Positions 17,860-48,601 of a stretch of DNA of 64,000 bases are shown here, piece by piece. The first letter of the stretch is position 1; the number at the start of each line of letters is the position of its first letter. A program made the position numbers and the translations under genes. Where the stretch lies: positions 1 to 64,000 of the IMG/VR virus record IMGVR_UViG_3300049855_000348; one strand, 5' to 3'. The notes below the pieces were generated by a model. That model was not told the origin of the DNA and ran no database searches. It saw only the letters and a list, made by a program, of their open reading frames with translations.

Positions 17860-18008
17860 CTCCTATGGTAGCCGTGAAAGCGCAAGGTGTAAAACCCCCA
17901 GGCGAGTAGAACGGAAGGAATCCGAAGTGGGTAGTTGACCAAGCTGTGGCCACAGCCGTCAGCGAGAGCGGAGGAGATAGGTGGGTTCGATTCCTGCCGG
18001 AGTCACCA
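17858..18008 (+). ncRNA. 151-nt tRNA-like RNA (acceptor stem, T-arm and CCA around a large insert)
   Basis: GACTCC pairs with GGAGTC-A-CCA; GTGGG-TTCGATT-CCTGC; carries the GYAA/CCCAR module. Confidence 0.65.
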
Positions 18009-18015
18009 AATGCTG

Positions 18016-18086: not shown

Positions 18087-18114
18087 TTGCAACTGAAATC
18101 AGTCTTGCTACACC
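18087..18114 (+). promoter_or_regulatory. Candidate promoter of the + tRNA-array leader
   Basis: TTGCAA-N16-TACACC. Shares AGTCTYGCTA with the site upstream of the - leader (40952-40979). Confidence 0.4.
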
Positions 18115-18128
18115 TCCACGTACCAGCC

Positions 18129-18278
18129 ATGAGACCTCTCACCTCCATACCAGCCGTTCGCGCCACCAAGTGGCAAGCGAAGCCCATGACCAAAACGGTC
18201 AATGGCGCACAGGGTTGCTTTGGAGTGACAACTGAACGCAATCAGGCCGATCACATTCCGGAACCAGGGTTCATGTAG
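18129..18278 (+). CDS. Attenuator leader peptide of the + tRNA array (49 aa; alternative start 18186)
   Basis: MRPLTSIPAVRATKWQAKPMTKTVNGAQGCFGVTTERNQADHIPEPGFM. Its 3' end is complementary to the terminator 5' arm. Confidence 0.8.
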   Translation: MRPLTSIPAVRATKWQAKPMTKTVNGAQGCFGVTTERNQADHIPEPGFM

Positions 18279-18307
18279 CAGACAAGGGTAAAACCTCCAA
18301 GCCACAT

Positions 18308-18345
18308 GAACCCCGGGACCAAAAAGTCTCGGGGTTCTTCTTTTT
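18308..18345 (+). terminator. Attenuator terminator before the + tRNA array
   Basis: GAACCCCGGGAC-CAAAAA-GTCTCGGGGTTC-TTCTTTTT. Confidence 0.9.
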
Positions 18346-18490
18346 CTGATCCTCACGGATCTTGACAACTTTATAATCGTGGAAGCCAATGAGGGGAGAA
18401 ATCCCTTCATTCTTGGACCTACCATCCTGTTCTACTAGACAGGGAAGCCTGTGGGGAGAAATCCTCTAGCCGTGGTGGTGGTCCTGGTAT

Positions 18491-18565
18491 CGTCGAGTAT
18501 TTCAGCGGAAGAATATCTGCATGACATGCAGAAGGTCGGTGGTTCGATCCCACCCTCGACGACCA
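18491..18565 (+). tRNA. tRNA-Val(GAC)
   Basis: Cloverleaf, loop ATGACAT, encoded CCA. Confidence 0.9.
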
Positions 18566-18570
18566 AACAA

Positions 18571-18648
18571 TGCGGAGTAACTGGAGATGGAACCAGCCCA
18601 GCCTCATAAGCTGAACAAACGTGTGTTCGAGTCACACCTCCGCAACCA
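18571..18648 (+). tRNA. tRNA-Met(CAT); Met versus Ile2 not resolvable
   Basis: Cloverleaf, loop CTCATAA, CCA. Confidence 0.88.
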
Positions 18649-18649
18649 T

Positions 18650-18839
18650 TTGCAAGGACCTCTCTGCCCACCATCTCGATCCTAAGAAGAAAGAAGACAA
18701 CATCGGTACGATGGTCAGAAGAAGAGTGGCTATCAAAACTTTGGAAATCGAACTGCAAAAGTGTCTCTGCGTGTGTGAGAACTGTCATCGCAAGATCCAT
18801 GCAGGTATCATCAAACCTTTTCTCAGTGCTGGATCATGA
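18650..18839 (+). pseudogene. Truncated HNH endonuclease remnant
   Basis: HHLDP.KK...KC.CVCENCHRKIH begins right after the tRNA CCA with no start context. Confidence 0.65.
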
Positions 18840-18886
18840 CCGAACGCCTGTGGTCATTCCCTGGCGGGCACTCGGATTCTTCACAT

Positions 18887-18963
18887 GGTGGTCGTAGCTC
18901 AATGGATAGAGCACTGGACTGTGGCTCCAGCGGCTGTGGGTTCGACTCCCATCGATCACACCA
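18887..18963 (+). tRNA. tRNA-His(GTG)
   Basis: Cloverleaf, loop CTGTGGC, G-1 present, A73. Confidence 0.92.
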
Positions 18964-18970
18964 GTTCATT

Positions 18971-19047
18971 GTGCGGAGTACGCGCCTGACCCAGGCAAGA
19001 GGGTTTGCTCTAACCTCCCAGAGAAGAACGGGAGGTTGCTTCGGCAT
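18971..19047 (+). ncRNA. Putative structured spacer RNA (three hairpins in a closing stem)
   Basis: GCCTG/CAGGC, AGAG/CTCT, AACCTCCC/GGGAGGTT. Confidence 0.4.
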
Positions 19048-19121
19048 GGCTTGGTCGCTCAACGGCAGGGCGCTGGTTTGAAAAACCAGAGACGAAGGTT
19101 CGACTCCTTCTCAAGCCACCA
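19048..19121 (+). tRNA. tRNA-Phe(GAA)
   Basis: Cloverleaf, loop TTGAAAA. Confidence 0.92.
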
Positions 19122-19133
19122 TCTCCTTCTCAC

Positions 19134-19211
19134 GGTCGGTTCACTGCATGGTGCAGTGTGCGCAAGGACAGTCCCCTAAGCACGGCGGTTCGATTCCCCG
19201 GCTGACCACCA
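19134..19211 (+). ncRNA. tRNA-like RNA with no canonical anticodon loop
   Basis: GGTCGGT/GCTGACC-A-CCA, TTCGATT loop, GC-GCAA-GG..CC-CCTAA-GC in place of the anticodon arm. Confidence 0.7.
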
Positions 19212-19221
19212 TTTTTTTCAT

Positions 19222-19294
19222 CGGCTGGAATAGGTGCGCGTAAGGCATCAGATCCCCTCAAGCGATGGAGGTTCGATTCCTCCCTGGCCGACCA
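19222..19294 (+). ncRNA. tRNA-like RNA lacking a D-arm
   Basis: CGGCTGG/CTGGCCG-A-CCA, perfect GGAGG-TTCGATT-CCTCC, module GC-GTAA-GG..CC-CCTCAA-GC. Confidence 0.7.
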
Positions 19295-19296
19295 AG

Positions 19297-19402
19297 TACG
19301 ACTTCTCGGGTTCCGCAAGGAACGATCGTCCTACTGGCTACAACGGTGAAAATCCGGTGGATGCCAGAGGTGGTGGGATGGCTCACCAAATAAACTGAGA
19401 CT
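19297..19402 (+). ncRNA. Structured RNA A (paralog of RNA B)
   Basis: ACGAC start, CTCGG/CTGAG closing stem, GCAA tetraloop, AATAAA before the closing strand. Confidence 0.55.
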
Positions 19403-19407
19403 CATAA

Positions 19408-19484
19408 GCACCGATCGGCTGGTGGAAAAGCTACCTCCCTTTCAAGGAGATTCTTCGCGGGTTCGACTCCCGTTCGGTGTACCA
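19408..19484 (+). tRNA. tRNA-Glu(TTC)
   Basis: Cloverleaf, loop CTTTCAA. Confidence 0.88.
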
Positions 19485-19590
19485 ACGACGGAGCACAGTG
19501 ATCGAAAGATCGACCGGCTAGGCAACTCGCAAGAGTGCTCGAAAGGGCGGAGTCTAGTGGGGTGTAAGCACCTCGAATAAACTGTGAGTT
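19485..19590 (+). ncRNA. Structured RNA B (paralog of RNA A)
   Basis: ACGAC start, CACAG/CTGTG closing stem, GAAA and GCAA tetraloops, AATAAA. Confidence 0.55.
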
Positions 19591-19592
19591 AT

Positions 19593-19666
19593 GGTCCTTT
19601 CTGTCAGTGGCAGGCAGCCTGATTCTCAGTCAGACAACGTCGGTTCGATTCCGACAAGGACTACCA
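19593..19666 (+). tRNA. tRNA-Glu(CTC)
   Basis: Cloverleaf, loop TTCTCAG. Confidence 0.88.
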
Positions 19667-19669
19667 GCA

Positions 19670-19767
19670 AGAGCGGGACACTGGTTCGAGGCCAGTCATC
19701 GCAAGATGTAGCTCAGGGTGAAAACGTAAGGCATCAAACCCCCAAGTAATCCGGAAGAGCACGCTCT
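19670..19767 (+). ncRNA. Permuted (T-AS-D order) tRNA mimic with inserted module
   Basis: AGAGCG/CGCTCT closing; CTGG-TTCGAGG-CCAG; CATC-GCAA-GATG; TA-GCTC...GAGC. Confidence 0.55.
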
Positions 19768-19771
19768 ATTT

Positions 19772-19849
19772 GTTCCTGAGGACTAACGGCTAGGTCACCT
19801 CCCTGTCACGGAGTCATTCAAGTGGGTTCAACTCCCATCAGGAACGCCA
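19772..19849 (+). tRNA. tRNA-Asp(GTC)
   Basis: Cloverleaf, loop CTGTCAC, G73. Confidence 0.9.
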
Positions 19850-19853
19850 ACAT

Positions 19854-19927
19854 CCACGCTTCGTCTAATGGCAGGGCACCGATCTGATACGTCGGATACC
19901 AAGGTTCGATTCCTTGAGCGTGGACCA
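19854..19927 (+). tRNA. tRNA-Ile(GAT)
   Basis: Cloverleaf, loop CTGATAC. Confidence 0.88.
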
Positions 19928-19941
19928 CTTCAGTTTCACAT

Positions 19942-20016
19942 TGTGGGATGGCCTATGTGGTAGGGCACCCGGTTGTTACCCGGACTATACTGGTTCGACT
20001 CCAGTTCCCACAGCCA
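19942..20016 (+). tRNA. tRNA-Asn(GTT)
   Basis: Cloverleaf, loop TTGTTAC. Confidence 0.92.
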
Positions 20017-20021
20017 CTTTT

Positions 20022-20097
20022 GGGGTCGTAGCTCAATTGGCAGAGCACCTGTTTTGCACGCAGGATGTTAGCGGTTCAAGTCCGCTCGATTCCACCA
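20022..20097 (+). tRNA. tRNA-Ala(TGC)
   Basis: Cloverleaf, G3:U70. Confidence 0.95.
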
Positions 20098-20167
20098 CGC
20101 GGGAGTAATCTGAGAAATCAGAGAGAATTACCAGCCTCACAGCCGGCAAGGAGTAGACTGTGGTTTT

Positions 20168-20243
20168 GGGGAGTTAGCTCATCTGGTAGAGCGCGAGCAT
20201 GGCATGTTCGAGGCGAGGAGTTCAAGTCTCCTACTCTCCACCA
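20168..20243 (+). tRNA. tRNA-Ala(GGC)
   Basis: Cloverleaf, G3:U70. Confidence 0.92.
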
Positions 20244-20256
20244 CTTTCAATCATAC

Positions 20257-20340
20257 GGGCGGCGATATCTCAGAAGCGTAAGGATGATCCCCCAAGTTAT
20301 GAGAAAATCCTATGGGGTGAAAGCCCTCAACTGTCCACCA
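20257..20340 (+). ncRNA. tRNA-like RNA with an Ala-type acceptor (G3:U70, A73, CCA) and a TGAAAGC T-loop
   Basis: GGGCGG/CTGTCC-A-CCA; TGGGG-TGAAAGC-CCTCA; module GC-GTAA-GG..CC-CCCAA-GT. Confidence 0.6.
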
Positions 20341-20342
20341 CT

Positions 20343-20432
20343 CGATCGGAACGTCAGTCGCAGCGTAAGGCTTTTATCAAATCCCCAAGCTGTGCAGTAA
20401 CGCAACTGCTGGTGAAAGACCAGCCTGATCAC
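20343..20432 (+). ncRNA. tRNA-like RNA with a TGAAAGA T-loop and no encoded CCA
   Basis: GATCGG/CTGATC; GCTGG-TGAAAGA-CCAGC; module GCAGC-GTAA-GG..CC-CCAA-GCTGT. Confidence 0.55.
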
Positions 20433-20440
20433 TCTTCAAA

Positions 20441-20523
20441 CGAAACCCTGGCGGTGAAAAACCGCTTCCTCGGCGCATCCCCTACGTTGGTCTACCTCTG
20501 AAGTTTATCGACCCAGGGCTTCG
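20441..20523 (+). ncRNA. Structured RNA with a T-loop-like first hairpin
   Basis: CGAAACCCTGG/CCAGGGCTTCG closing; GCGG-TGAAAAA-CCGC. Confidence 0.45.
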
Positions 20524-20602
20524 TGTTTCTGCTAGCTAGATTCATGGGTACCATCAGCGACATCGACGATCAACTCTACGTTCAGCACATCAAGTAACGC
20601 AT

Positions 20603-20677
20603 ACGTCGATAGCTCCAATGTAGAGCGACGGTTTCCAAAACCGTTGGTTGGGGGTTCAAGTCCCTCTCGACGTGCCA
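20603..20677 (+). tRNA. tRNA-Trp(CCA)
   Basis: Cloverleaf, loop TTCCAAA. Confidence 0.92.
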
Positions 20678-20682
20678 TTCAC

Positions 20683-20757
20683 TGAGAGATAGTTCAACGG
20701 TAGAACGCTGCCCTCTGGAGGCAGATGCTAGAGGTTCGAGTCCTCTTCTCTCAACCA
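20683..20757 (+). tRNA. tRNA-Gln(CTG)
   Basis: Cloverleaf. Confidence 0.95.
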
Positions 20758-20760
20758 CAC

Positions 20761-20835
20761 TCAGGAATAGTTCAACGGTAGAACGCTGACCTTTGGAGTC
20801 AGTTGCTCCAGGTTCGAGTCCTGGTTCCTGAACCA
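20761..20835 (+). tRNA. tRNA-Gln(TTG)
   Basis: Cloverleaf. Confidence 0.95.
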
Positions 20836-20843
20836 TTTCACAT

Positions 20844-20922
20844 CTGCGTGTAGCTCAGCCTGGAACAGAGCACTTGCCTTGGGAGCAAGGGGTCGGAGGT
20901 TCAAATCCTCTCACGTAGACCA
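20844..20922 (+). tRNA. tRNA-Pro(TGG)
   Basis: Cloverleaf, loop CTTGGGA. Confidence 0.92.
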
Positions 20923-20927
20923 TTCAT

Positions 20928-21009
20928 GACGGTCGAGTCGAAAGTCGGGCGCTCCGGCATCAGATTGCAACCCTGATGACAGGTGGTTGAACTCCACCGA
21001 TCGTCTCCA
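20928..21009 (+). tRNA. tRNA-Cys(GCA) with an enlarged D-arm
   Basis: Loop TTGCAAC, U73, D region about 8 nt longer than normal. Confidence 0.8.
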
Positions 21010-21014
21010 TTCAC

Positions 21015-21090
21015 GTGTGTGTATCTCAGTGGCTAGAGAGCTTCCTTGCCAAGGAAGAGGTCGCAGGTTCAAGTCCTGTCACACACTCCA
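21015..21090 (+). tRNA. tRNA-Gly(GCC)
   Basis: Cloverleaf, U73. Confidence 0.95.
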
Positions 21091-21093
21091 ACA

Positions 21094-21160
21094 GGGGCAA
21101 ATGCGGGTTCAACTCCCGCTGCGACTTCGGTCGTATCGTCTAACCCGGTAGGACGGCCCC
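21094..21160 (+). ncRNA. Circularly permuted tRNA fold (YrlA/Y-RNA-like T-AS-D order); structure may extend to about 21280
   Basis: GGGGC-AAAT-GCGGG-TTCAACT-CCCGC-TGCGAC-TTCG-GTCGTA-TC-GTCT-AACCCGGT-AGGAC-G-GCCCC. Confidence 0.75.
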
Positions 21161-21282
21161 ACCCCGTGCGGATTGGATACCCGCACGGAATCCGAAGTCC
21201 TCAGGTTCAAGCCAAGGCAACCGCTCGCCGAGCGGAATACAAAATGCGGCTAGAGCAGGGGAGCACGAACGTGGCCCCGTTT

Positions 21283-21356
21283 GCCGATGTAGGTCAATGG
21301 TAGATCTGCTGCCTTCCAAGCAGAGGACGCGGGTTCGATTCCCGCCATCGGCTCCA
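21283..21356 (+). tRNA. tRNA-Gly(TCC)
   Basis: Cloverleaf, U73. Confidence 0.92.
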
Positions 21357-21360
21357 TCAT

Positions 21361-21436
21361 GTGTGCCTAGCTCAATGGATAGAGCATCTGACTACGGATC
21401 AGAAGGTTGAAGGTTCGAGTCCTTCGGTACACGCCA
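21361..21436 (+). tRNA. tRNA-Arg(ACG)
   Basis: Cloverleaf. Confidence 0.95.
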
Positions 21437-21469
21437 TTGCATAGCGATCTTTTTGGCTAGCATGTAACC

Positions 21470-21997
21470 ATGTCACTCAAAGATGCCCTCTTTCACTTTC
21501 GTGATCTTGGTTACTACGTTGATGATCAAGGAAATGTATTCAACCCAAGAGGAAAGATTCTTCGGTGTTCAACAAACAAAGATGGTTACAAAAGAATTAC
21601 CACAAGAATGAGAAATCATCCAGTTCATGGGGATTGGTGCCCTAAGGTTGAGGTTCACCGTCTTGCCGGTTATCAGAAGTTCGGAGACAAAATCTTCACC
21701 GAAGGACTTGAGATCTGTCACGATGATGGCGATAAGCGAAACAACGCCAAAGACAATCTGCGACTCGATACGCACAAAAGTAATATGATGGATGTTCCTC
21801 AAGAGGTAAGGATCAATAGAGCAAGACGTGCTGGTAGAGAACATGCCAAGCTAACAGATGAGCAGGTTGCTCACATTCGTTCATCTGGCATGACTCTGAA
21901 ACAGATCATGCAAACATACGGTATCAGTAAGTCTGGTGCCTCCTACGTCAGATCAGGAAAGACTTACGCCAGCCCGTGTATCCCCTCGCTTTCCTAA
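21470..21997 (+). mobile_element. HNH homing endonuclease inserted in the tRNA array
   Basis: VHRL...ICHDDGDKRNN..DNL, C-terminal HTH-like segment; AT-richer than its flanks. Confidence 0.85.
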
Positions 21998-22051
21998 AGC
22001 GGTGAAAGGGTAACTGGACACATGCAGGTTCAAATCCTGCCTCGGGTACCA
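21972..22051 (+). tRNA. Non-canonical rewired tRNA-Arg(CCT)-like, 80 nt
   Basis: Acceptor stem, T-arm and CCA; anticodon arm TCGCT-TTCCTAA-AGCGG nested inside CCC/GGG; AACTGG lies 3' of it. Confidence 0.7.
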
Positions 22052-22054
22052 CAT

Positions 22055-22132
22055 CGGGGTCCTAGTACGGGAGTGTCTGCATACCATTCGGTCACTACAG
22101 CCTCGGCGGTTCAATCCCGCCAACCTCGACCA
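22055..22132 (+). ncRNA. tRNA-like RNA lacking a D-arm (G3:U70, A73, CCA)
   Basis: CGGGGT/ACCTCG; GGCGG-TTCAATC-CCGCC; single long bulged arm ending in loop TCTGCATAC. Confidence 0.6.
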
Positions 22133-22135
22133 CAT

Positions 22136-22211
22136 GCGATCGTATTTCAATTGGAAGAACACCACCCTCCGAAGGTGGAAGGTGCAGGTTCGAGTCCTGC
22201 CGATCGCGCCA
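22136..22211 (+). tRNA. tRNA-Arg(CCG)
   Basis: Cloverleaf. Confidence 0.92.
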
Positions 22212-22214
22212 TCT

Positions 22215-22290
22215 GGTGACGTAGCTCAATGGACAGAGCTTCCAGCTTCTACCTGGATGGTTGGAGGTTCGAGTCCTCCCGTCATCGCCA
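22215..22290 (+). tRNA. tRNA-Arg(TCT)
   Basis: Cloverleaf. Confidence 0.95.
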
Positions 22291-22294
22291 TCAT

Positions 22295-22369
22295 GCTGCC
22301 ATAGCCGAGTGGTAAGGCACTTCATTCGTAACGAAGAGACCGGGTGTTCGATTCACCCTGGCAGCACCA
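22295..22369 (+). tRNA. tRNA-Thr(CGT)
   Basis: Cloverleaf. Confidence 0.9.
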
Positions 22370-22373
22370 TCAC

Positions 22374-22449
22374 GCCCCCATAGCTCAGTTGGTAGAGCAA
22401 CAGTTTTGTAAACTGTAGGTCGTCGGTTCGATCCCGACTGGTGGCTCCA
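22374..22449 (+). tRNA. tRNA-Thr(TGT)
   Basis: Cloverleaf. Confidence 0.93.
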
Positions 22450-22456
22450 TTTTCAC

Positions 22457-22530
22457 GCTGCTATAGTTCAGTGGTAAAACACGTCCTTGGTAAGGACGAG
22501 CCCCAGGTTCAATTCCTGGTAGCAGCACCA
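22457..22530 (+). tRNA. tRNA-Thr(GGT)
   Basis: Cloverleaf. Confidence 0.93.
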
Positions 22531-22535
22531 TTCAT

Positions 22536-22611
22536 CCATCAGTAGCGTAATTGGCAGCGCAGCGGGTTTTTACCCCGTGGGTTGTGAGTTCGACTCTCAC
22601 CTGATGGACCA
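22536..22611 (+). tRNA. tRNA-Lys(TTT)
   Basis: Cloverleaf. Confidence 0.92.
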
Positions 22612-22617
22612 TCGCAT

Positions 22618-22693
22618 GCATCCATAGCTCAACTGGCAGAGCACTCGGTTCTTACCCAAGGGGTTGGAGGTTCAAATCCTCCTGGATGCACCA
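22618..22693 (+). tRNA. tRNA-Lys(CTT)
   Basis: Cloverleaf. Confidence 0.92.
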
Positions 22694-22707
22694 TCATTAC
22701 ATAAGTC

Positions 22708-22941
22708 ATGCCAGCATGGAAATGGATGATCCTGAAGTTCTGTACCAGAGCGCATTTCATGCGGCTCATAGCAACCTTGATCATCCTCATCGCAGGCTTT
22801 CAATCTCTCTACTACCAGAAGATTGAAGACACGTGGTTGATCCTGGTTGGTGCAGTGATGAACCACTACTTCAACCACAAAGAAGCTGCGAACGTCACGG
22901 AAGAAGACAAGAATCCGGACGACGAATGCAAGGTCGGTTAG
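22708..22941 (+). CDS. Small two-TM membrane protein embedded in the tRNA array
   Basis: Two hydrophobic segments and an acidic tail; the stop codon lies inside tRNA-Val. Confidence 0.55.
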   Translation: MPAWKWMILKFCTRAHFMRLIATLIILIAGFQSLYYQKIEDTWLILVGAVMNHYFNHKEAANVTEEDKNPDDECKVG

Positions 22942-23006
22942 TTCAGCGGTAGAACGCTTCTCTTACACGGAAGATGTCGGGGGTTCGATCCCCTCACCGA
23001 CTACCA
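22932..23006 (+). tRNA. tRNA-Val(TAC)
   Basis: Cloverleaf. Confidence 0.93.
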
Positions 23007-23011
23007 CTTGC

Positions 23012-23091
23012 CGGTCTGTATCGGCTCGGTCTTATAAGCCGTCGAAACCGTAATTGGTTACATGAGGGTTCGACTCCCTCCAGACCGACCA
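23012..23091 (+). tRNA. Non-canonical rewired tRNA-Ile(TAT)-like, 80 nt
   Basis: Same segment lengths as 21972-22051; loop CTTATAA; CGG/CCG covaries with CCC/GGG. Confidence 0.75.
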
Positions 23092-23126
23092 CAAGGCTTC
23101 CACGATTCCCCTCCAAGGAGAACGCC

Positions 23127-23678
23127 ATGGCACCCGGTGCCTGCATAGTGCTGAACAACTCGTATGCCTTCCTCTCGATCAACAACTGGTTCGAGGCGAT
23201 GCGTCTCGTCGTCCGTGGCCGCGCCGTGCCGCTGGCAAACTACGAGACCAAGATCCGGGCAGAGCGTGAAGAGTTCGACGCACCAGCAGTCGTGATGCTG
23301 AAGCACCACGTGAACCTGGGGCGGAGAAGGCAACCTTTCACCCTGCCATCACATCGCAACATCTGGGTCCGTGATGGTGGGCACTGCGCCTACTGCAATC
23401 ACCCGCTGACGCTGCGGACAGTGACCAAGGAACACGTGATGCCCAGGTCACGCGGTGGAGAAGACAGCCTCTTGAACGTCGTGTCCGCCTGTGGCGACTG
23501 CAACGCCAAGAAGTCGAACCGCACGCCGGCAGAAGCCGGCATGAAGTTCCGTGACGGCATCGAACTGCGTCACCTCAACGATGAGGAGAAGCTGACGGTG
23601 CTGCTCAAGACCTCCCAGAGCCACGAACGGAAGACGTGGCTGGGGTTCCTCAAGAAGCAGGGTCTGACGCTGTTCTGA
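23127..23678 (+). CDS. HNH endonuclease (McrA-like)
   Basis: VLNNSY, RNIWVRDGGHCAYC, T.EHV.PRSRGG, NVV.AC..CN.KK.NRTP; SD AAGGAG. Confidence 0.88.
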   Translation: MAPGACIVLNNSYAFLSINNWFEAMRLVVRGRAVPLANYETKIRAEREEFDAPAVVMLKHHVNLGRRRQPFTLPSHRNIWVRDGGHCAYCNHPLTLRTVTKEHVMPRSRGGEDSLLNVVSACGDCNAKKSNRTPAEAGMKFRDGIELRHLNDEEKLTVLLKTSQSHERKTWLGFLKKQGLTLF

Positions 23679-23896: not shown

Positions 23897-24578
23897 TCAC
23901 TCCATCAAGCCGTCCAGGTCCCCCTTCATCCAAGCACGCACCGTGATGGATCGCCCTGTGCGGTGGTCCCTCACGTTGTCGTTCTGCACCTGGATGGTGC
24001 GGATCTTGTCACCACGCTCGCCGGAGCCTATCTGCTGCCGGCGATCGTCGTTTTGATCGGTATGGTGTTGGGTAGCGATGCCCCCCGCCAGACGCTCCTG
24101 TAACAGGGCCATGGCAGCATGCTTGTTCGACAACTGGTGGCGCTCTTTGTCGGCACGGACAGTCATGCCCGTCGGACGATGGGTGATCTGCACACCCGAC
24201 TCAGTCTTGTTGCGGTGCTGACCACCTGGGCCAGATCCACGGACGGTGATGATATCCAGGTCGCGTTCATCCAGCACGAACTTCTGCTGCTGGCTTCCAT
24301 CGATCACCGCCACGGTGACCGTCGAGCTATGGACACGACCCTTGCGCTCAGTGGGTGGAACCCGCTGCCAACGATGGCCGCCTGCTTCTTGGCTGAAGGC
24401 TTCTTTGGCTCCCTTACCAGTAACGGTGAGCCGCAGAAAGCCGTGAGACTCTTGATCCACTACAACTTCAAAGACCCCTCCGCGCTCCCCATTTGCGATA
24501 GATGGTGAGGTGTTCGCGCACGAGCAATCGTGCGTCCTCGCCGCCTTCAGCGGCTCTGATTTCGAGGTGGATAGTCAT
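23897..24578 (-). CDS. Class I peptide chain release factor lacking domain 1 (about 226 aa), needing a +1 programmed frameshift at 24468-24473
   Basis: Frame 0: MTIHLEIRAAEGGEDA...RRGL-TGA. +1 frame: EVVVDQ...EAGGHRWQRVPPTERKGRVHSSTVTVAV...GSGPGGQHRNKTESGV..KIRT. Confidence 0.88.
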
Positions 24579-31147: not shown

Positions 31148-34009
31148 TTACCACCATGCCTTGAAGAAGCCGATACCGTCGGCGAAATATCTGAATGTAA
31201 CTGACATACCTTTTTTACGCAGGTAGGTAGAAAGACCTTCTATGGTATAATCAGAGATTGAATGACCACTCATCATACTTGCTGAGTATCGATTGTCTCC
31301 TTCCCTGAAGTTATGAAACTCACCGACAATCTTTTTTATTTTAGAAAGTTTTTTGGTGGTGTAGAGGATAGGGAACTCAGATCCTTCACAGTCAATCTTC
31401 AAAAGATCAACTTCATCTAAGATATCGTCTAGACCAATTACAGGGACACTTATTGTTCCACGCTCATAAATCACGTGTGCTCCTCCAAAGTTGTTTCCAA
31501 CGTTGGTGAGACTTGCTATTGATTTACGATATTCGTCTGATCTTCCTATAGCGGCTGTGATGACTTTGATAGATGGATATTTTTTTACATTTTGTGCAAG
31601 TATGAGGAGGTTGTCTAACATCGGCTCACAACATATCACTTCTTTTGCACCAAGTGAGGCGCACATGGCTGAGAATGCACCAATGTTGCCGCCGATGTCC
31701 AACACTGTTTTTCCGCTCACGTCAGATGGTTGTATCTCATACTCGTTTTCAATGACAACAGAGTGAATGACGCCCTGGTCAGTTGTATTTTCACGATAAA
31801 CGAGTTCGTTGGCGATGTTTTTTGCTTTGGCTTTACTGATAGGAAGTTTTGGAATAACTCTTTTGTGTGAATAGTATTCATCAAGCTGTGTTTGAGCAGT
31901 GATAAACTCAACAACATCGCCATGATAAAAACCAAGACCACCACTCTTCTTTATTTTGAAAAGATACAATGGTGTTCCACAACACATAGCCACATGCGCA
32001 ATACCTGAATCAACGGCAAACACAGCACGAGCCGACGAGATTTCGTCAAACAAGGCTTTCATGTCGGTGCCATGGTCTTTGAATGTTGCTAATGGGAAGG
32101 ATGCCTTCATCCATTCATCATGTGGTTGAAGGAAGACTATGTTATAGCCTTGCTCCGTGAATCGAGCGACCAATTGAACGATGTCGTCTTTAGAGATGTC
32201 GTAGTTGTTCGAGTAAGATCCCGACGAATGACCTACAAGGTGAAAAATGACATTGTTCCTTCCGGAATCACCACAAGAATATCCAAGATAGTCATGTGGA
32301 AAATCCAACGCATCAGCCGAACGGTCTTTATTACCGAATTTCATGACCTTGATGAAATTTGAAATAAAGTTAGAGCACTCGAAACTACTCCAGTGCTCGT
32401 GAACACAGTTGTCACTAGGAACTGGGATCCACCCTGTGAAATCCTCAGGTCCACCGTCAACTGGTCGAATCTTTGTTACAGGAATCTGCTCGATCCATTG
32501 ATCAATGTCTTGGTGTTCTATCCTGGCGATGTCTACAAACTCTCGCATCTTTTGATCAATGAGTTTGCTGTTACCGTAAAAGTAAAGTTTCTGCTTTGTA
32601 TGTTTAGCATACCAATAATACAAAGAGACATGCAATATAGCATCACCAAGACCTGACTTCCAGTTGATGTAAAGGAAGGGTTTTTCTTTCACCGCATTCT
32701 CCTTCCTATCAAACCACCGCTCAACCTTGTGTTCATCGTAGTTGAGCGTCCAGTCCCAGAAGGCTTCCTTGCTGCGGTAGACCCACATAGGAACACGCCA
32801 CCCTGCCGCGATGAAGCAGGGTCCGCTCTGGGGGGTGATCAACAGATCGAGCTTGCTGACCATGTCGACTATCCAGGAGATGTCGCCGTTGACCTGTCGC
32901 AGGTCTTCAACGCCCTCAGGAACGATTCTGTTGTCTCGGTTGCCTATCAGGAAGATCCGATGCTTTGGATAGCTTTGACGGGCTTCCTTGAGCATCTGGT
33001 CTAGGACTACAGGGTCGATATCTCCCTGGGTGTTGCTGTGGGTGATCAAACCGATGAGTCCGCCGTTTGGCCTTGGCTTTGGTCTGTTGAAGTGGATGTC
33101 AAAAGACTTTCCTGGAGTCATGGTCGGATCCATGAAACGGTAAAATCTCTTCACACCGTTCATCTGAGGCCATTCGTCTAAAGAAGGGTTACCACCGCAA
33201 TCGATCATGTCGGGAGTGCGTTCAGACCAGATCACCCCATCAAAAAACTCACAGGCAGCTTTGCGTTCTGGTTGAAACCAGACCAACACCGAGTGACCGG
33301 TTTTTATATGATAGAGATGAGCGGCAGCACAGAAACCTAACACATCACCGAGCATCTGGTGACCCATCCAGAATGATTTTTCGGCTTTCTTGACGTTGTG
33401 TGAATCGATAAGGAAATCGTCGTAGACGACCTTTTTCTTGAATCGAACGACTACCTTTTTTTCAATATCAGAGAAGTCATCAAGCTGGAAGGCATATCCC
33501 TCTACGGTGATTTTGACATTTAGATTACTTGCACGATAGAGATAATCGACACCTTCCTGCTTCAAAATCTCAACATTATATTTGAGAAAATCATAGGTCT
33601 TTTTTGGATCATTTACGGCATAAAATTGTGTGCCCCATGGAGCACCACTTTTGATGGTGAATAAGCCTTTTGTATCGAGAGGTAGTGTTGTTTCACTGTG
33701 AAAAAACAAAAGGTCGTAATCGTCACCTTCGTTCATGATACCATCAATATCAGACATGAGTCCACGACGAAAGAGAGCATCATCTTCACAGATGAAGATC
33801 TTCTTATGTCCAGCTTTTATCGCCATTTCTAGGACTTTGATATGACCGAGAGTACAAGCCAGTCGACGATTCTCGTTCACGACTCCGTCTACCACAACGT
33901 AGGTCGTGTTCATCTCTTCCATTTGCTTAGCAAAAATGGCACGTCGATCACTACGGCTGGGGAGACTCAGGACGTAGACCTGATCAACGTAATCATTCAA
34001 CGATGTCAT
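31148..34009 (-). CDS. Multidomain enzyme: GT25-like, two GT9-like domains and a FkbM-like methyltransferase
   Basis: YVLSL..RSDRR..CTLGH..I.EDDA; DLLITPQSGPCFIAA; AVFAVDSG.AHVA...GTP; VLDIGGNIG..LKIDCEGSE. Confidence 0.8.
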   Translation of the reverse strand: MTSLNDYVDQVYVLSLPSRSDRRAIFAKQMEEMNTTYVVVDGVVNENRRLACTLGHIKVLEMAIKAGHKKIFICEDDALFRRGLMSDIDGIMNEGDDYDLLFFHSETTLPLDTKGLFTIKSGAPWGTQFYAVNDPKKTYDFLKYNVEILKQEGVDYLYRASNLNVKITVEGYAFQLDDFSDIEKKVVVRFKKKVVYDDFLIDSHNVKKAEKSFWMGHQMLGDVLGFCAAAHLYHIKTGHSVLVWFQPERKAACEFFDGVIWSERTPDMIDCGGNPSLDEWPQMNGVKRFYRFMDPTMTPGKSFDIHFNRPKPRPNGGLIGLITHSNTQGDIDPVVLDQMLKEARQSYPKHRIFLIGNRDNRIVPEGVEDLRQVNGDISWIVDMVSKLDLLITPQSGPCFIAAGWRVPMWVYRSKEAFWDWTLNYDEHKVERWFDRKENAVKEKPFLYINWKSGLGDAILHVSLYYWYAKHTKQKLYFYGNSKLIDQKMREFVDIARIEHQDIDQWIEQIPVTKIRPVDGGPEDFTGWIPVPSDNCVHEHWSSFECSNFISNFIKVMKFGNKDRSADALDFPHDYLGYSCGDSGRNNVIFHLVGHSSGSYSNNYDISKDDIVQLVARFTEQGYNIVFLQPHDEWMKASFPLATFKDHGTDMKALFDEISSARAVFAVDSGIAHVAMCCGTPLYLFKIKKSGGLGFYHGDVVEFITAQTQLDEYYSHKRVIPKLPISKAKAKNIANELVYRENTTDQGVIHSVVIENEYEIQPSDVSGKTVLDIGGNIGAFSAMCASLGAKEVICCEPMLDNLLILAQNVKKYPSIKVITAAIGRSDEYRKSIASLTNVGNNFGGAHVIYERGTISVPVIGLDDILDEVDLLKIDCEGSEFPILYTTKKLSKIKKIVGEFHNFREGDNRYSASMMSGHSISDYTIEGLSTYLRKKGMSVTFRYFADGIGFFKAWW

Positions 34010-39878: not shown

Positions 39879-39967
39879 TGGCGGAAGTGGCACGAATCGA
39901 ACGTGCAAGACCCGTGAAGGTCTGTTGAGGTTCAAGCTCAGTCCCCTCGCCTATAGGGAGCACTTCC
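39879..39967 (-). tRNA. tRNA-Ser(TGA)
   Basis: Long variable arm, G73, CCA. Confidence 0.9.
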
Positions 39968-39972
39968 ATGAA

Positions 39973-40064
39973 TGGCGGATACGGCAGGATTTGAACCTGC
40001 GGGTGACTTGCGCCACCTCCTAGTTTCGAGCTAGGTGCGATAAGCCGGGCTCTGCCACGTATCC
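39973..40064 (-). tRNA. tRNA-Ser(CGA)
   Basis: Long variable arm, G73. Confidence 0.92.
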
Positions 40065-40069
40065 ATGAA

Positions 40070-40162
40070 TGGCGGATTGCTAGGGAGTCGGACCCTCAAC
40101 GTGTTTCCACGTTTCATCGCTTTCCAGGCGAGTACGGTTAGCCACCACCGTCAACACAATCC
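40070..40162 (-). tRNA. tRNA-Ser(GGA)
   Basis: Long variable arm, G73. Confidence 0.88.
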
Positions 40163-40167
40163 ATGAA

Positions 40168-40259
40168 TGGCGGAACGGGTGAGATTTGAACTCACGGGTG
40201 ACTTTCGCCACCTCTTCCTTAGCAAGGAAGTGCAATAGGCCAGACTCTGCCACCGTTCC
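40168..40259 (-). tRNA. tRNA-Ser(GCT)
   Basis: Long variable arm, G73. Confidence 0.93.
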
Positions 40260-40263
40260 ATGA

Positions 40264-40347
40264 TGGTCTCTGAGGTGGGACTCGAACCCACAAAGCTGCG
40301 ATGTTTAGGACCGCAAGGTGTGCCATTCCCTATGAAGCCACTCAGAG
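40264..40347 (-). tRNA. Atypical tRNA-Leu(TAA)-like
   Basis: GCGGT-CCTAAAC-ATCGC (C33), expanded D region, short variable loop. Confidence 0.65.
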
Positions 40348-40351
40348 AAGT

Positions 40352-40429
40352 TGGTGTCCCATGCAGGAGTCGAACCTGCAAAGATCTGCATTTTGAATGC
40401 AGCGCGTCTGCCAATTGCGCCAATGGGAC
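40352..40429 (-). tRNA. tRNA-Leu(CAA), short variable loop
   Basis: Cloverleaf, A73. Confidence 0.9.
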
Positions 40430-40430
40430 G

Positions 40431-40507
40431 TGGTATCCACGAAGAGATTTGAACTCTTACTGTTCGGTGCCTAAGACCGATGCCTCTGCCGGTTGGGCTA
40501 CGTGGAC
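40431..40507 (-). tRNA. tRNA-Leu(TAG), short variable loop
   Basis: Cloverleaf, A73. Confidence 0.9.
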
Positions 40508-40513
40508 GTGAAA

Positions 40514-40599
40514 TGGTGGGATAGGCTGGAGTCGAACCAACAGTGGCGGTGAAGCGTCACGTTTACAGCGTGGTGAGCCTTCCAATGCTCAACTATCCC
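40514..40599 (-). tRNA. tRNA-Tyr(GTA)
   Basis: Long variable arm, loop CTGTAAA. Confidence 0.9.
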
Positions 40600-40609
40600 A
40601 GATGAAAAA

Positions 40610-40688
40610 TGGTACCCGTGACAGGAGTCGAACCTGCAATTTTACTACCACCTCAAGGTAGCGCGTCTGCCAATTTCGCCACACGGGC
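40610..40688 (-). tRNA. tRNA-Leu(GAG), short variable loop
   Basis: Cloverleaf, A73. Confidence 0.9.
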
Positions 40689-40691
40689 ATG

Positions 40692-40769
40692 TGGTACCGG
40701 GGGCGGGAGTCGAACCCGCAAAGAACATGGACCTGAACCATGCGCGTCTGCCTGTTTCGCCACCCCGGC
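40692..40769 (-). tRNA. tRNA-Leu(CAG), short variable loop
   Basis: Cloverleaf, A73. Confidence 0.9.
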
Positions 40770-40800
40770 GTGTATGAAGCGACCACGATCAGAAAGTTGT

Positions 40801-40835
40801 AAAAGAAAGAACCCCGGCTTTTTGGGCCGGGGTTC
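40801..40835 (-). terminator. Attenuator terminator before the Ser/Leu/Tyr tRNA array
   Basis: GAACCCCGGC-CCAAAAA-GCCGGGGTTC-TTTCTTTT. Confidence 0.9.
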
Positions 40836-40860
40836 GAGAGTTCGCTTTGGGCTTTTGTGC

Positions 40861-40941
40861 CTACTCCAGCGTGCTCCGAATCCCGGTCTCCGAATAGGAG
40901 AGGGACAACGACAGCAGACTGAGTGAGAGAGAACGGCGCAT
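40861..40941 (-). CDS. Attenuator leader peptide (26 aa) of the Ser/Leu/Tyr tRNA array
   Basis: MRRSLSLSLLSLSLSYSETGIRSTLE, SD GAGGAG; too short to appear in the ORF track. Confidence 0.88.
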   Translation of the reverse strand: MRRSLSLSLLSLSLSYSETGIRSTLE

Positions 40942-40982
40942 TGCGCTGCTCCTCATAGCGAGACTACTCCAGGTGGCAAGAA

Positions 40983-41564
40983 CTATTTCTTGTGGGTGCC
41001 CTCCACGCCACGAGCGACACGGTCCATGGTGCGCTTGTGCAGCCAGAGGCGAGCAGTGTCGAGATGGTTCAGTGCGACAGCATTGTCACGGCAGGAAAAT
41101 TCTCCCTTCATGAAGCCCTCCAAACGATCGATGAGGATGGCGAGCAGGGCTTCGTGGCTGTTGCCGTTGTAGCCGGCTTCTTTCACTGGGCCGTTCTGGA
41201 AGGTGATGCGCTGGACTTTGAAGGGGGTTTTGACTTTGAACCCAAGGGAACCCATGATTGGGATCTTCGCAAAGTTGAAATCGTCCAGAATAGTGAGGGT
41301 GGTTTCTTCGTTGATGTCGAATTCGGTTCGACTCGGGCCATCCTCTTCGTTGGAATCCAACAGAGCTACAACATCTTCCCATTCTTTGTGTTGTTTCCGA
41401 ATCACCGGATCTTCAGAATCCGGTTCAGGTTCGCCATAGGGGATCAACACGACATAGTCGTGGCAGGCACCACCACTTCCCGGCTTGTCCAACACGAAGA
41501 TGCGCAAAGCCTCGTTGAGGCCGTTGACGCGGTGGGCGGTGAGTTCACGGATATTAGGACGCAT
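40983..41564 (-). CDS. tad1: Tad1-like cyclic-nucleotide sponge (anti-Thoeris) with an acidic insertion
   Basis: GSGGACHDY, ITFQNG, LL.I..DRL..F..G.FS.R.NA.AL.H...A..W...R..DR..R.V.GT match Bacillus phage Tad1 as I recall it. Confidence 0.8.
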   Translation of the reverse strand: MRPNIRELTAHRVNGLNEALRIFVLDKPGSGGACHDYVVLIPYGEPEPDSEDPVIRKQHKEWEDVVALLDSNEEDGPSRTEFDINEETTLTILDDFNFAKIPIMGSLGFKVKTPFKVQRITFQNGPVKEAGYNGNSHEALLAILIDRLEGFMKGEFSCRDNAVALNHLDTARLWLHKRTMDRVARGVEGTHKK

Positions 41565-44836: not shown

Positions 44837-47800
44837 GTGATCGCCATGCCGACCCTTTCCTTGCATTCCCATACTGTCTACTCCCAACGTGACTCGATCG
44901 TAAAGCCTGATGCAATAGCTACCAAGATCAAAGCCAACGGCGGGACGCACTACGCCGTTACCGACCACGGCACTGCCCAGGGCTGGCTGGCCGTCCGTGA
45001 TGCCTGCAAGAAGGCCAAGTTGATCCCGATCTATGGGGTCGAGCTTTACGTCAACGACTTCATCCTCGTTTTCAAGGAGATCCAACGACTCCGTGATGCC
45101 GCCCCCAAGAAGGAAGCCCCACAGGTCGTATTGCAGGCGATCAGGGACAAGATCCTGCCTCTGATGTCCCCAGCACAGGCCACCTACTTCACGTCGAACC
45201 TGGACGATCCCAAGGACCCTGTCGCAACCGCCAAGCAACTGATGATGCGCCTGGGCTACGGCTACGAGCATCTGGTGGCTGTGGCCGTCACCGCCCAAGG
45301 CCGGGAGAACTTGATCCGCCTACACAACAAGGGGCAGACCGACGGCAACTACTTCAAGCCGCAGGTGACCACCGACCAATGCCTTGCCGCTGCTGAGGGC
45401 ATCATTTGGACGACCGCCTGCATGGGTGGTCCGATCGCCAAACGTTTCCGCTACGACCCGACTGGCCAGGAGGCGCTGAATTACCTCAACCGCTGGCAGG
45501 CACACAAGGCGAACTTCTACCTGGAGGTCCAGCCGCTCGACCTACTCGACCAACGCCGGAACAACAAGCGCCTGATCGCTGTCTCCAAGGTGACCGGCTT
45601 CCCGCTGGTCCTGTCACAGGACAACCACCACCTGAACGAAGAGGACTGGGTTGCTCACCGTGCGCTGATGCTCTCTCAGAACGACCGTACGATCGAACAG
45701 ATCGAAGAGACCTATGCCTACCAGGGGAGCCTTTTCACCTTCACCGAACTGAAGCGCAAGCTCGGCGTCTCCACCACGTGGCAAGCGCAGGAGATCATCG
45801 AGAACGAAAAGATCGAAGTGAGGATCCCGGCTGGTCACCACTACGGGGATGTGAAGCTCCACTGGCGTACCAATGACGATGTCCGCAAACAGTGTGAGAC
45901 CACCAACCCTGAGTTGATGCCGATCATCGACGAATGCTTCGCCACCACCGATCGACTCTGCCAGGAGATCAAAGAGATCCCCTGGTCAACCAAGCATCGC
46001 CTGACGCACTATGACGACGCCAGGGCACAAGCGTTGGCAATCTGCCATCAGCGTCTGAAGGACCTTGGCTTCGATCGTGAGACCGTCAACGATGGTACTG
46101 TGGTTGTCACTGAAGGTGAAAAGCCGTCAGAGATCAAGGCCAAGTATCTCGCTTGGTTGGAGAAGGAAGACAAGGTTATCACCGCCTGTGGATTCTGGGA
46201 TTACATCTGGACGCTCTATCGAGTGACCAAGGCTGTGCAGGACGAAGGTATCCCAGTCGGCTACGCTCGTGGCTCTGGCGGTGGTTGTCTCGTGATGTTC
46301 CTCCTTGGTATCATCCGTGTGAACCCAGTGAAGTATGGTCTGTACTTCGAGCGATTCCTGAACCCGGCTCGTCTCGGTTTGGATCCGAAAACCTTGAAGC
46401 GTGTGAAGGAGATGGCGTCCTGCCCTGACGCTGACCTGGACTTCTCATCGATCAGTCGCAAGCGGGTCATCGAGATCACCGAACAGATGTTCGGCAAGGA
46501 GTTCGTGGTTCCTGTTGGAACCGTCGGCGAAGCGAAACTCAAGACCGCCATGGCCGATCTGTGCCGCGTACTCAAGATCACGCAGGCTACCTACATGCCG
46601 GTCTCGAAGGAACTGCCTGAAGACATCAATGGCGTCATGACCTTCGAGGATGCGATGAAGGTGCCGGCATTCGCCGAGTTCATCGCCAAGCATGAACTCC
46701 TGTCCAAGCTGTTGGCTCCGCTCATCGGTGTGATCCGTTCTACTGGTCAACACGCTGGCGGTGTCTGCATCGCCGACGTTCCGGTTGCCAATGCTGTGCC
46801 GGTGATCCGTGCTGGTGCCAAGGATGGTGGCAACATTGTCACCGGCTTCGGTGAGTCTGGTGCTGAGCGTGCTCTTGAATCCATCGGCTTCGTGAAGTTC
46901 GACTTCTTGGCTACTGATACTGTCGACCATGTCTCTTTGTGTGCCCGTTCGCTCTACGAAGAACATCTGGCCAACGGCGGTCAGCCGTGGGTGAAGCCTG
47001 GGGAAATTCTGCTCTACCCTGAGCAAATCCCACACTTCACCGAGAACGATCCCAACGTGATGAAGGCGATCTTCCATACCGGCAACACCGACGGCATCTT
47101 CCAGATGGAAGAACAGATCGGTAAGCAGATGGTGCAGTTGGTGAAGCCAGACACCGTCGATGAAATCTCCGACATCAGCACCATGATCCGTCCTGGTTGT
47201 TTGCAGGCGCATTGTACGTGGTTCACCAATGCCACCGGTGCGGTTGAGAACAAAGTCGGCAGTGGTCTCCACTTCGCTTACGCTGCTCGTAAGTTCGAGC
47301 GTGAACTCAACCCACCACCAGATCTACCTCAGGAAATCTTGGAGGTCTTGAAGCCAACGCACTACTGCTGCATCTACCAGGAACAGATGATGTTCCTGAT
47401 TGAGATCGTCACTGGTGGCAAGATGTCACTCGGTGAAGGTGACATCTACCGTCGTGCCGTCGAGCACTCGGCGAAGGGTGTTCCGGCAGCAATCGAGACG
47501 CTGGCCAAGATGGAAGGCGAGATGAAGGCTGCCGGTGCCTACTCACCGGACATCGTCGAGACTGTCTGCACGATCATCAAGGGTGGTGCGGCCTACTCAT
47601 TCAATAAAGCACACTCGCTGTCCTACTCGCTCTTCAGCTACGGTCAGGCGTGGTTCAAGCATTACTACCCGCACATCTTCCTGGCCAGTCACGTGAGTCT
47701 GCTCGCAGCGAAGAACAAGCTGGAGAAGGCTCACAAGATCATCAACAACGGTCGCTCGATGGGTATCGAGATCAAAGCACCACACGTCCTCCACTCGAAA

Positions 47801-48601
47801 GAGAAGGCAACGTGGGGCGCAGACAAGAAGACAATCTTCCTTCCGTTCACCACCGTCAAAGGTGTGAAGGATGAAACCGCTCTGGCAATCCCTAGACTCG
47901 CTCAGGGCTGCACCACCGTTCTCGATTTCATGCTCAAGGCTCGGAAGGATCCGGCGATCAAGAAGAATCATCTGATCGACCTCGCTCGCATCGGCGGCTT
48001 CGATGGTATGGACAATGTTCCGCGCCTCAAAACGGTTGCTGCGATCACTTACTGTCTTGCTCGTGTGACGGCTAAACAAAGCGATCAGATCTTCACCGAG
48101 TTCTGGAATCAGGCTCTGGCATTCACGTGCCTTGGCGAGATCACCAACGAACGAAAGTCACAGATCGAAGTGGAGGTGTTCGGTTCGTTCATCAACGAGT
48201 CACCACTCGACCGTATGCTGCCATGGCTCCACGAGAACGGCTGGCAACCCATGTCCCAGATCGTGCCAGAGAAGGATCAGGAATTCCCGGTGTTCTTCCT
48301 CACCACCGGTGTGACGAAGAAGGTCCACAAGACCGGCAACAGCAAGGGTAAGGAATGGCTCAAGCTGACATGCTGGGATGGTGAGGGCGTCTGCGAACTC
48401 AACATCTGGGCTCATGACCTCCAGGGAACTCCCGAGGAGGGCATCGTCGGCTACCACGGAATCATCAAGCCGAACCAAGTCTATTTGGCCATCATCCAAG
48501 CCGACGGGGAGCGCCCGGTCTCCTTGGCTCGACGCAAGGTCTACAACGCACGGGTTCCTGAGATCCGGACGACATTGGCGATCAAAAACCTGGGTAGCTA
48601 G
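44837..48601 (+). CDS. dnaE: DNA polymerase III alpha subunit
   Basis: PHP domain (LHSHT.YS..D, TDHG, GVE), RGSG, FERFLNP.R, PD.D.DF, HAGG, KFDFL, FNKAH. Confidence 0.95.
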   Translation: MIAMPTLSLHSHTVYSQRDSIVKPDAIATKIKANGGTHYAVTDHGTAQGWLAVRDACKKAKLIPIYGVELYVNDFILVFKEIQRLRDAAPKKEAPQVVLQAIRDKILPLMSPAQATYFTSNLDDPKDPVATAKQLMMRLGYGYEHLVAVAVTAQGRENLIRLHNKGQTDGNYFKPQVTTDQCLAAAEGIIWTTACMGGPIAKRFRYDPTGQEALNYLNRWQAHKANFYLEVQPLDLLDQRRNNKRLIAVSKVTGFPLVLSQDNHHLNEEDWVAHRALMLSQNDRTIEQIEETYAYQGSLFTFTELKRKLGVSTTWQAQEIIENEKIEVRIPAGHHYGDVKLHWRTNDDVRKQCETTNPELMPIIDECFATTDRLCQEIKEIPWSTKHRLTHYDDARAQALAICHQRLKDLGFDRETVNDGTVVVTEGEKPSEIKAKYLAWLEKEDKVITACGFWDYIWTLYRVTKAVQDEGIPVGYARGSGGGCLVMFLLGIIRVNPVKYGLYFERFLNPARLGLDPKTLKRVKEMASCPDADLDFSSISRKRVIEITEQMFGKEFVVPVGTVGEAKLKTAMADLCRVLKITQATYMPVSKELPEDINGVMTFEDAMKVPAFAEFIAKHELLSKLLAPLIGVIRSTGQHAGGVCIADVPVANAVPVIRAGAKDGGNIVTGFGESGAERALESIGFVKFDFLATDTVDHVSLCARSLYEEHLANGGQPWVKPGEILLYPEQIPHFTENDPNVMKAIFHTGNTDGIFQMEEQIGKQMVQLVKPDTVDEISDISTMIRPGCLQAHCTWFTNATGAVENKVGSGLHFAYAARKFERELNPPPDLPQEILEVLKPTHYCCIYQEQMMFLIEIVTGGKMSLGEGDIYRRAVEHSAKGVPAAIETLAKMEGEMKAAGAYSPDIVETVCTIIKGGAAYSFNKAHSLSYSLFSYGQAWFKHYYPHIFLASHVSLLAAKNKLEKAHKIINNGRSMGIEIKAPHVLHSKEKATWGADKKTIFLPFTTVKGVKDETALAIPRLAQGCTTVLDFMLKARKDPAIKKNHLIDLARIGGFDGMDNVPRLKTVAAITYCLARVTAKQSDQIFTEFWNQALAFTCLGEITNERKSQIEVEVFGSFINESPLDRMLPWLHENGWQPMSQIVPEKDQEFPVFFLTTGVTKKVHKTGNSKGKEWLKLTCWDGEGVCELNIWAHDLQGTPEEGIVGYHGIIKPNQVYLAIIQADGERPVSLARRKVYNARVPEIRTTLAIKNLGS

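Follow-up and report, generated by a model that had tools for sequence, protein, structure and literature searches.

Codon-sampling reading frames in front of two phage tRNA gene clusters, a candidate attenuation switch

Two leader units and their tRNA arrays

We analyzed a 64,000-nt window of a 220-kb contig from IMG/VR. The window contains two tRNA gene clusters. Each of them is preceded by a short open reading frame (ORF), a terminator and a conserved motif. We refer to the unit on the plus strand as unit 1 and to that on the minus strand as unit 2. Their features are the following:

40952-40979, minus strand: promoter-like site of unit 2, TTGCCA, 16 nt, TATGAG, ending 10 nt before the ATG (function inferred)
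40861-40941, minus strand: leader ORF 2, 26 codons plus TAG (40863-40861)
40891-40932, minus strand: run of 14 Ser/Leu/Tyr codons, the proposed sensor (segment 1)
40873-40887, minus strand: predicted antiterminator 5' strand (segment 2), codons 19-23
40809-40841, minus strand: terminator hairpin (segments 3 and 4; hairpin at 40835-40809) plus the flank that joins the antiterminator
40801-40808, minus strand: T tract of the terminator
40783-40800, minus strand: conserved motif after the terminator, of unknown function
39879-40769, minus strand: class-II tRNA array, Leu cag, gag, tag, caa; Tyr gta; Ser gct, gga, cga, tga
18087-18114, plus strand: promoter-like site of unit 1, TTGCAA, 16 nt, TACACC, ending 14 nt before the ATG
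18129-18278, plus strand: leader ORF 1, 49 codons plus TAG (18276-18278)
18263-18280, plus strand: predicted antiterminator 5' strand of unit 1, covering the last codons and the stop
18308-18345, plus strand: terminator of unit 1 with its T tract
18365-18382, plus strand: second copy of the conserved post-terminator motif
18491-23006, plus strand: class-I tRNA array, 26 tRNAs and no Ser, Leu or Tyr

Codons 4-17 of leader ORF 2 (40932-40891) read SLSLSLLSLSLSYS and use nine different codons. This is the longest Ser/Leu/Tyr run in all six frames of the window, apart from a tandem repeat with unit TCAAGCTCAAGCTCG at positions 1-168. The longest run in 200 shuffles was 10, and about 2e-5 runs of 14 or more are expected. 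A ten-pair G+C-rich hairpin with a T tract follows 25 nt after the stop, and the first tRNA gene starts 39 nt after the T tract. Nine tRNA genes follow at 40769-39879, four Leu, one Tyr and four Ser. One of them, Ser(gga) at about 40070, was recovered only with a lower ARAGORN threshold. Default ARAGORN also missed Asp at 19772-19846. The leader samples 8 of the 9 species by Watson-Crick codons and all 9 with wobble (P about 0.001 against random codons).

A previous sequence-only reading of this locus had pointed out the codon run and its varied synonyms, a GAGGAG Shine-Dalgarno sequence before the ATG, and a pairing of 40886-40874 with 40840-40827. This observation was confirmed, and the coordinates and the pairing it gave are correct. 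GAGGAG (40954-40949) lies 7 nt before the ATG. However, this Shine-Dalgarno sequence is absent from relatives. The reading did not include the second unit, the hairpin between segments 1 and 2, or the likely dedicated promoter.

The paralogous unit 1 (18087-18382) has the same anatomy and a near-identical terminator. The 18-nt motif after it has only two exact copies in the window, one at each unit. Leader ORF 1 holds 19 amino-acid types but only 2 Ser/Leu/Tyr residues, and it samples 24 of the 26 tRNA species of its array. The two leaders are therefore complementary in composition, as the two arrays are. The 19 types in a 49-residue peptide are not extraordinary (P of 0.01-0.27 per leader). 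The coverage of tRNA species is the informative test.

Only tRNA genes and homing endonucleases follow the units, and not genes for amino-acid biosynthesis or synthetases. At 21470-21997, 22974-23678 and 18621-18839 (plus strand), HNH homing-endonuclease genes lie inside and at the end of array 1, together with a 72-aa Cys/His-rich ORF between tRNAs. The 108 nt between the unit 1 motif and the first tRNA (18383-18490) contain GGGGAGAAATCC twice, with unknown purpose. Three tRNA-like stretches (17935-18010, 19134-19293 and 20923-21014) have T-arm-like GGTTCGATTCC sequences but fail the standard tRNA thresholds. The last one has a GCA anticodon loop at the position where relatives have tRNA-Cys. 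Just beyond array 1 and its flanking HNH gene, a truncated class-I release-factor-like gene (23897-24460, minus strand) encodes a 187-aa protein with an RF-1 domain (GGQ) and only the tail of a PCRF domain. The gene upstream of unit 2 (40983-41564, minus strand) belongs to the Acb2/Tad1 hairpin family (PF24729), according to precomputed annotations of it and about 1,500 relatives. This family holds sponges for defence signalling nucleotides. Nevertheless, our own Pfam scan gave no hit for it. The window also encodes a DNA polymerase III alpha-type replicase (44837-48601, plus strand) and a 953-aa protein with glycosyltransferase and FkbM methyltransferase domains (31148-34009, minus strand).

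Leader composition and tRNA content in related phages

We searched for relatives to investigate whether the units are conserved. GenBank phages hold no close relative, and no cultured relative or host is known. Relatives of the Acb2/Tad1-like gene within IMG/VR are not syntenic with tRNA arrays. Exact-pattern scans of IMG/VR with the post-terminator motif and with the T-tract junction gave only chance hits. A scan of genome contigs returned only generic HNH genes at or below 41% identity, without any clue to the host. The useful relatives came from a large protein collection, using the Acb2/Tad1-like protein, and from the HNH endonuclease beside array 1. Together they gave ten further contigs of uncultured T4-like phages with Gp23-type capsid genes (labels beginning with L denote the contigs examined). 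Their tRNAs are in the same order. All have a type 1 unit where the start of the array is on the contig. Eight have a type 2 unit upstream of the Ser/Leu/Tyr tRNA block (L041, L044, L045, L047, L048, L053, L060, L070). An intact ORF is present in every unit of the 11 clade contigs and in two AT-rich types.

The type 2 leaders share no nucleotide run with the window. However, each has 9-15 consecutive codons of the class-II kind, and in five of the six relatives tabulated this is the longest such run in the locus. In L044, L045, L047 and L070 the two units lie back to back between divergent arrays, with no gene upstream. The terminators there cannot be gene-end terminators. In L041 and L048 the HNH gene separates array 1 from unit 2. 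L041 also carries a TROVE (Ro60-like) gene inside its tRNA array (11883-13409), and Rfam gave a weak Y-RNA-like hit on a window tRNA.

The leader composition tracks the tRNA content. Every type 2 leader samples all the species of its block (9/9, 9/9, 6/6 and 9/9). The type 1 leaders sample 24/26, 19/20 and up to 33/33, each above random codon draws. The differences between phages are the informative cases. TTA appears only where Leu(taa) is present, as in L041 and L045, whereas the window has neither. Likewise, CTG appears only where Leu(cag) is, and L045 lacks both. Gln codons move from leader 1 to leader 2 in the phages whose Gln tRNAs moved. In L053 and L060 the two Gln tRNAs sit in the class-II block. 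There, the leader 2 run reads LLLQSSQSYLLSLSQ with both CAA and CAG, and L060's leader 1 is the only type 1 leader without Gln. L051 has Ser(tga) in its class-I array and six Ser codons in leader 1. Over 18 units, amino acids with a tRNA in the block appear in the sensor part in 163 of 168 cases, and those without one in 53 of 174 cases (2x2 table 163/53/5/121, odds ratio 74). The units are related, so we treat this as descriptive.

A terminator-pattern scan also hit an independent lineage, an AT-rich 256-kb phage contig. Its single mixed array has 16 tRNAs for 16 amino acids. Codons 2-24 of its leader, a 23-codon stretch, contain exactly those 16 amino acids and no Gly, Ser, Thr or Met. A simulation with the composition of that phage gives P of about 3e-6. 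A relative whose neighbouring protein is 65% identical has 28 tRNAs, including Ser, Thr, Gly and Met, and its leader contains those residues.

The device is not universal. L160 has no leader at all. L031 has no antiterminator, and it presents a perfect sigma-70 promoter after its terminator. Phage T4 has no such unit before its tRNA cluster.

TAG ends 9 of 13 leaders in the core clade, against 8 of 58 long ORFs in the window. L053 and L060, whose leaders end in TGA, carry a tRNA with a CTA anticodon that ARAGORN calls Pyl.

Terminator, alternative pairing and translation start

All 15 units examined have a canonical terminator 18-35 nt after the stop (23-33 nt in the type 2 units of relatives). 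Its helix covaries among 13 units, with changes on both sides in 6 of 10 pairs. In 14 of the 15 units, the last codons of the ORF are complementary to the 5' arm of the terminator plus a few flanking bases. The energies are -17 to -27 kcal/mol, similar to or stronger than the terminator hairpin. The strand ends between 5 nt after and 9 nt before the first base of the stop. In window unit 2, RNAduplex gives -18.9 kcal/mol for the pairing of segments 2 and 3, against -19.5 for the terminator hairpin (shuffle P = 0.02). In unit 1, the strand pairs with 18300-18317 at -23.6 kcal/mol (shuffle P < 0.004), and this pairing forms in the MFE fold when the 3' arm is left out. Two units have weak antiterminators (L044: P 0.12-0.14).

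On a plain MAFFT alignment the antiterminator helix does not exceed the shuffles, because the register differs between units. We replaced this count with an alignment-free test in which partners were swapped among the 14 units. The flanks differ between units and the partner changes accordingly. The cognate sum was -306 against -223 (sd 12) for swapped partners, and 0 of 200,000 permutations reached it.

In window unit 2, the naked RNA folds the Ser/Leu run onto the antiterminator strand, and the terminator forms. This is the classic 1:2 and 3:4 state. The 1:2 hairpin is clear in this unit. In most other units the antiterminator is predicted to form without a ribosome, and these folds do not decide whether termination without translation is a property of the device. 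We also masked the RNA as a ribosome would and folded the transcript up to the loop. The 5' arm was sequestered with probability 0.7-1.0 while the A site is in the early or middle ORF, and mostly 0-0.5 over the last codons and the stop. In type 2 units the change comes at the end of the Ser/Leu/Tyr run.

The Shine-Dalgarno sequence is not conserved, so translation rests on an inferred leaderless start. In 13 of 19 units there is TTGACN, then 16-17 nt, then a TA-start hexamer (often TACAAG) ending 9-14 nt before the ATG. This suggests a dedicated promoter and a leaderless or nearly leaderless message, although it is an inference.

The motif after the terminator is 15-20 nt long, has a consensus of about TTGACAACTCTATATCGTGG and sits between the terminator and the first tRNA in most units. 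Related forms were found in L047 (7269-7283), L053 (3543-3557) and L060 (11957-11971). It could be an unusual promoter, a processing signal or a protein-binding site.

Attenuation as a possible feedback on tRNA supply

The interpretation given in the sequence-only reading, in which a ribosome stalled in the Ser/Leu run frees a strand that blocks the terminator, is supported by the comparative data. Our preferred explanation, held with good confidence, is that each tRNA array is preceded by a ribosome-mediated transcription attenuator of the trp/his type. Its short ORF would be a codon sampler for the tRNAs encoded downstream. If every sampled aminoacyl-tRNA is plentiful, the ribosome would run to the stop codon and cover the antiterminator strand. 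The terminator would then form and the array would not be transcribed. If any sampled tRNA is scarce, the ribosome would stall upstream, the free strand would pair with the 5' arm of the terminator, and RNA polymerase would read into the tRNA genes. The result would be a negative feedback on tRNA supply, working as an OR gate over 9 species in unit 2 and about 24 in unit 1. All the evidence is computational. The anatomy, its conservation, the match of leader to tRNA content and the complementary change of the alternative helices are demonstrated by our analysis. On the other hand, the translation of the ORF, the stalling, the actual termination and the physiological trigger are inferred, as no expression, ribosome-profiling or termination data exist and the response of read-through to stalling was not measured. 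Single sampled codons may give only short stalls. One candidate trigger is the loss of host tRNAs during infection or through tRNA-cleaving defences.

Other explanations are less likely. It is very improbable that the ORF is a chance product of a pyrimidine-rich spacer, with the hairpin as the terminator of the Acb2/Tad1-like gene. CT-rich DNA yields Ser and Leu in one frame, and the hairpin does follow gene 41564-40983. Nevertheless, the conservation of the run with different nucleotides, the shuffles, its relation with tRNA content and the four contigs with no preceding gene contradict this. It is also unlikely that the ORFs encode functional peptides, such as a hydrophobic Ser/Leu peptide, unrelated to sensing tRNAs. 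Type 1 leaders share an MRLIPT-like start and a DHIP-like stretch, and some attenuator peptides act in trans (peTrpL; PMC7968998). However, in leader 2 only composition is conserved, and not the residue order. Gln enters the run exactly where Gln tRNAs do, and the conserved C-terminal residues coincide with the RNA pairing strand.

Two further possibilities are also unlikely. In one of them, the ORF does sense cognate tRNAs, but the output is not control of array transcription. The arrays are driven mainly from the motif after the terminator, and the leader unit yields a short RNA or affects processing or stability. The position of the motif, its absence from elsewhere in the window and the consensus sigma-70 promoter of L031 at that place favor this view. 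Yet the TTGACA-like and TATA-like parts of the motif are only about 5 nt apart, which is not sigma-70 spacing, and by our reading a -10 element at normal spacing would place the start inside the tRNA. Moreover, the co-evolving antiterminator has no purpose unless read-through matters. The motif could still be a second promoter, and the attenuator would then be only one of several inputs. In the other, the attenuator reports amino-acid starvation or general translation capacity, and not the abundance of particular tRNAs. Stalling depends on charged tRNA, so both causes give the same signal, and unit 1 samples nearly all amino acids. In contrast, the synonymous codons are chosen to cover isoacceptors, for example five Leu and four Ser codons for nine tRNAs in L041. 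This matters only if individual tRNA species are being read. Besides, extra tRNA does not relieve amino-acid starvation.

The logic is that of the leader-peptide attenuators of enterobacterial amino-acid operons (trpL, hisL, leuL, thrL, ilvL, pheL). These have a short ORF rich in regulatory codons, an intrinsic terminator and a mutually exclusive antiterminator whose 5' strand is covered by a ribosome at the stop. Here, the downstream genes are tRNAs and not enzymes, the sensor reads many isoacceptors (9 to 33) rather than one amino acid, and the element is phage-borne and probably leaderless. The pheM leader of the pheST (phenylalanyl-tRNA synthetase) operon applies attenuation to a component of the translation machinery, with feedback through charged tRNA. 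It controls a synthetase through a single amino acid, whereas here the tRNA genes themselves would be controlled. T-box riboswitches also read the state of a specific tRNA by transcription attenuation, but they bind uncharged tRNA directly through a specifier codon and T-box loop, without translation. In mycobacteria, leaderless poly-Cys short ORFs act as codon-run sensors for downstream expression (bioRxiv 10.1101/834739). Those sense one amino acid, control protein-coding genes, and are not described as working through an intrinsic terminator/antiterminator pair.

No Rfam leader family or T-box model matched at the gathering score. Only tRNA hits were obtained in the window, and the best other hit at the locus scores 20.6 bits against a cut-off of 55. 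Full-text literature searches found no description of a leader-peptide attenuator before tRNA genes. A Phe-rich leader at E. coli pheV was considered as a precedent. The sequence upstream of pheV in MG1655 shows none, and leaders of 3-4 nt are reported for pheU and pheV (PMC7049720).

How phages regulate their tRNA genes is essentially unknown, and bacterial tRNA genes are thought to be controlled at promoters, not by sensing their own products. A sampler leader would be the first attenuator whose output is tRNA, and a natural multi-input OR gate built from single codons. It offers a compact part for synthetic circuits that report the availability of individual isoacceptors. The rule that leader composition equals the downstream tRNA set is a simple genomic signature that can be searched for in other viruses and in cellular tRNA arrays. 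In a broader reading, which we consider slightly more likely than not, large phages run a translation-coupled homeostat for their own tRNA pool. A leaderless sampler ORF would poll up to 33 isoacceptors at once and open transcription of the array when any one is missing. This would let the phage detect and repair host tRNA loss, including that caused by tRNA-cleaving defences, species by species. In this view, the leader is rewritten by selection each time a tRNA gene is gained, lost or moved. A sampler leader gives a direct handle on why phages carry tRNAs: the leader lists which tRNAs the phage monitors.
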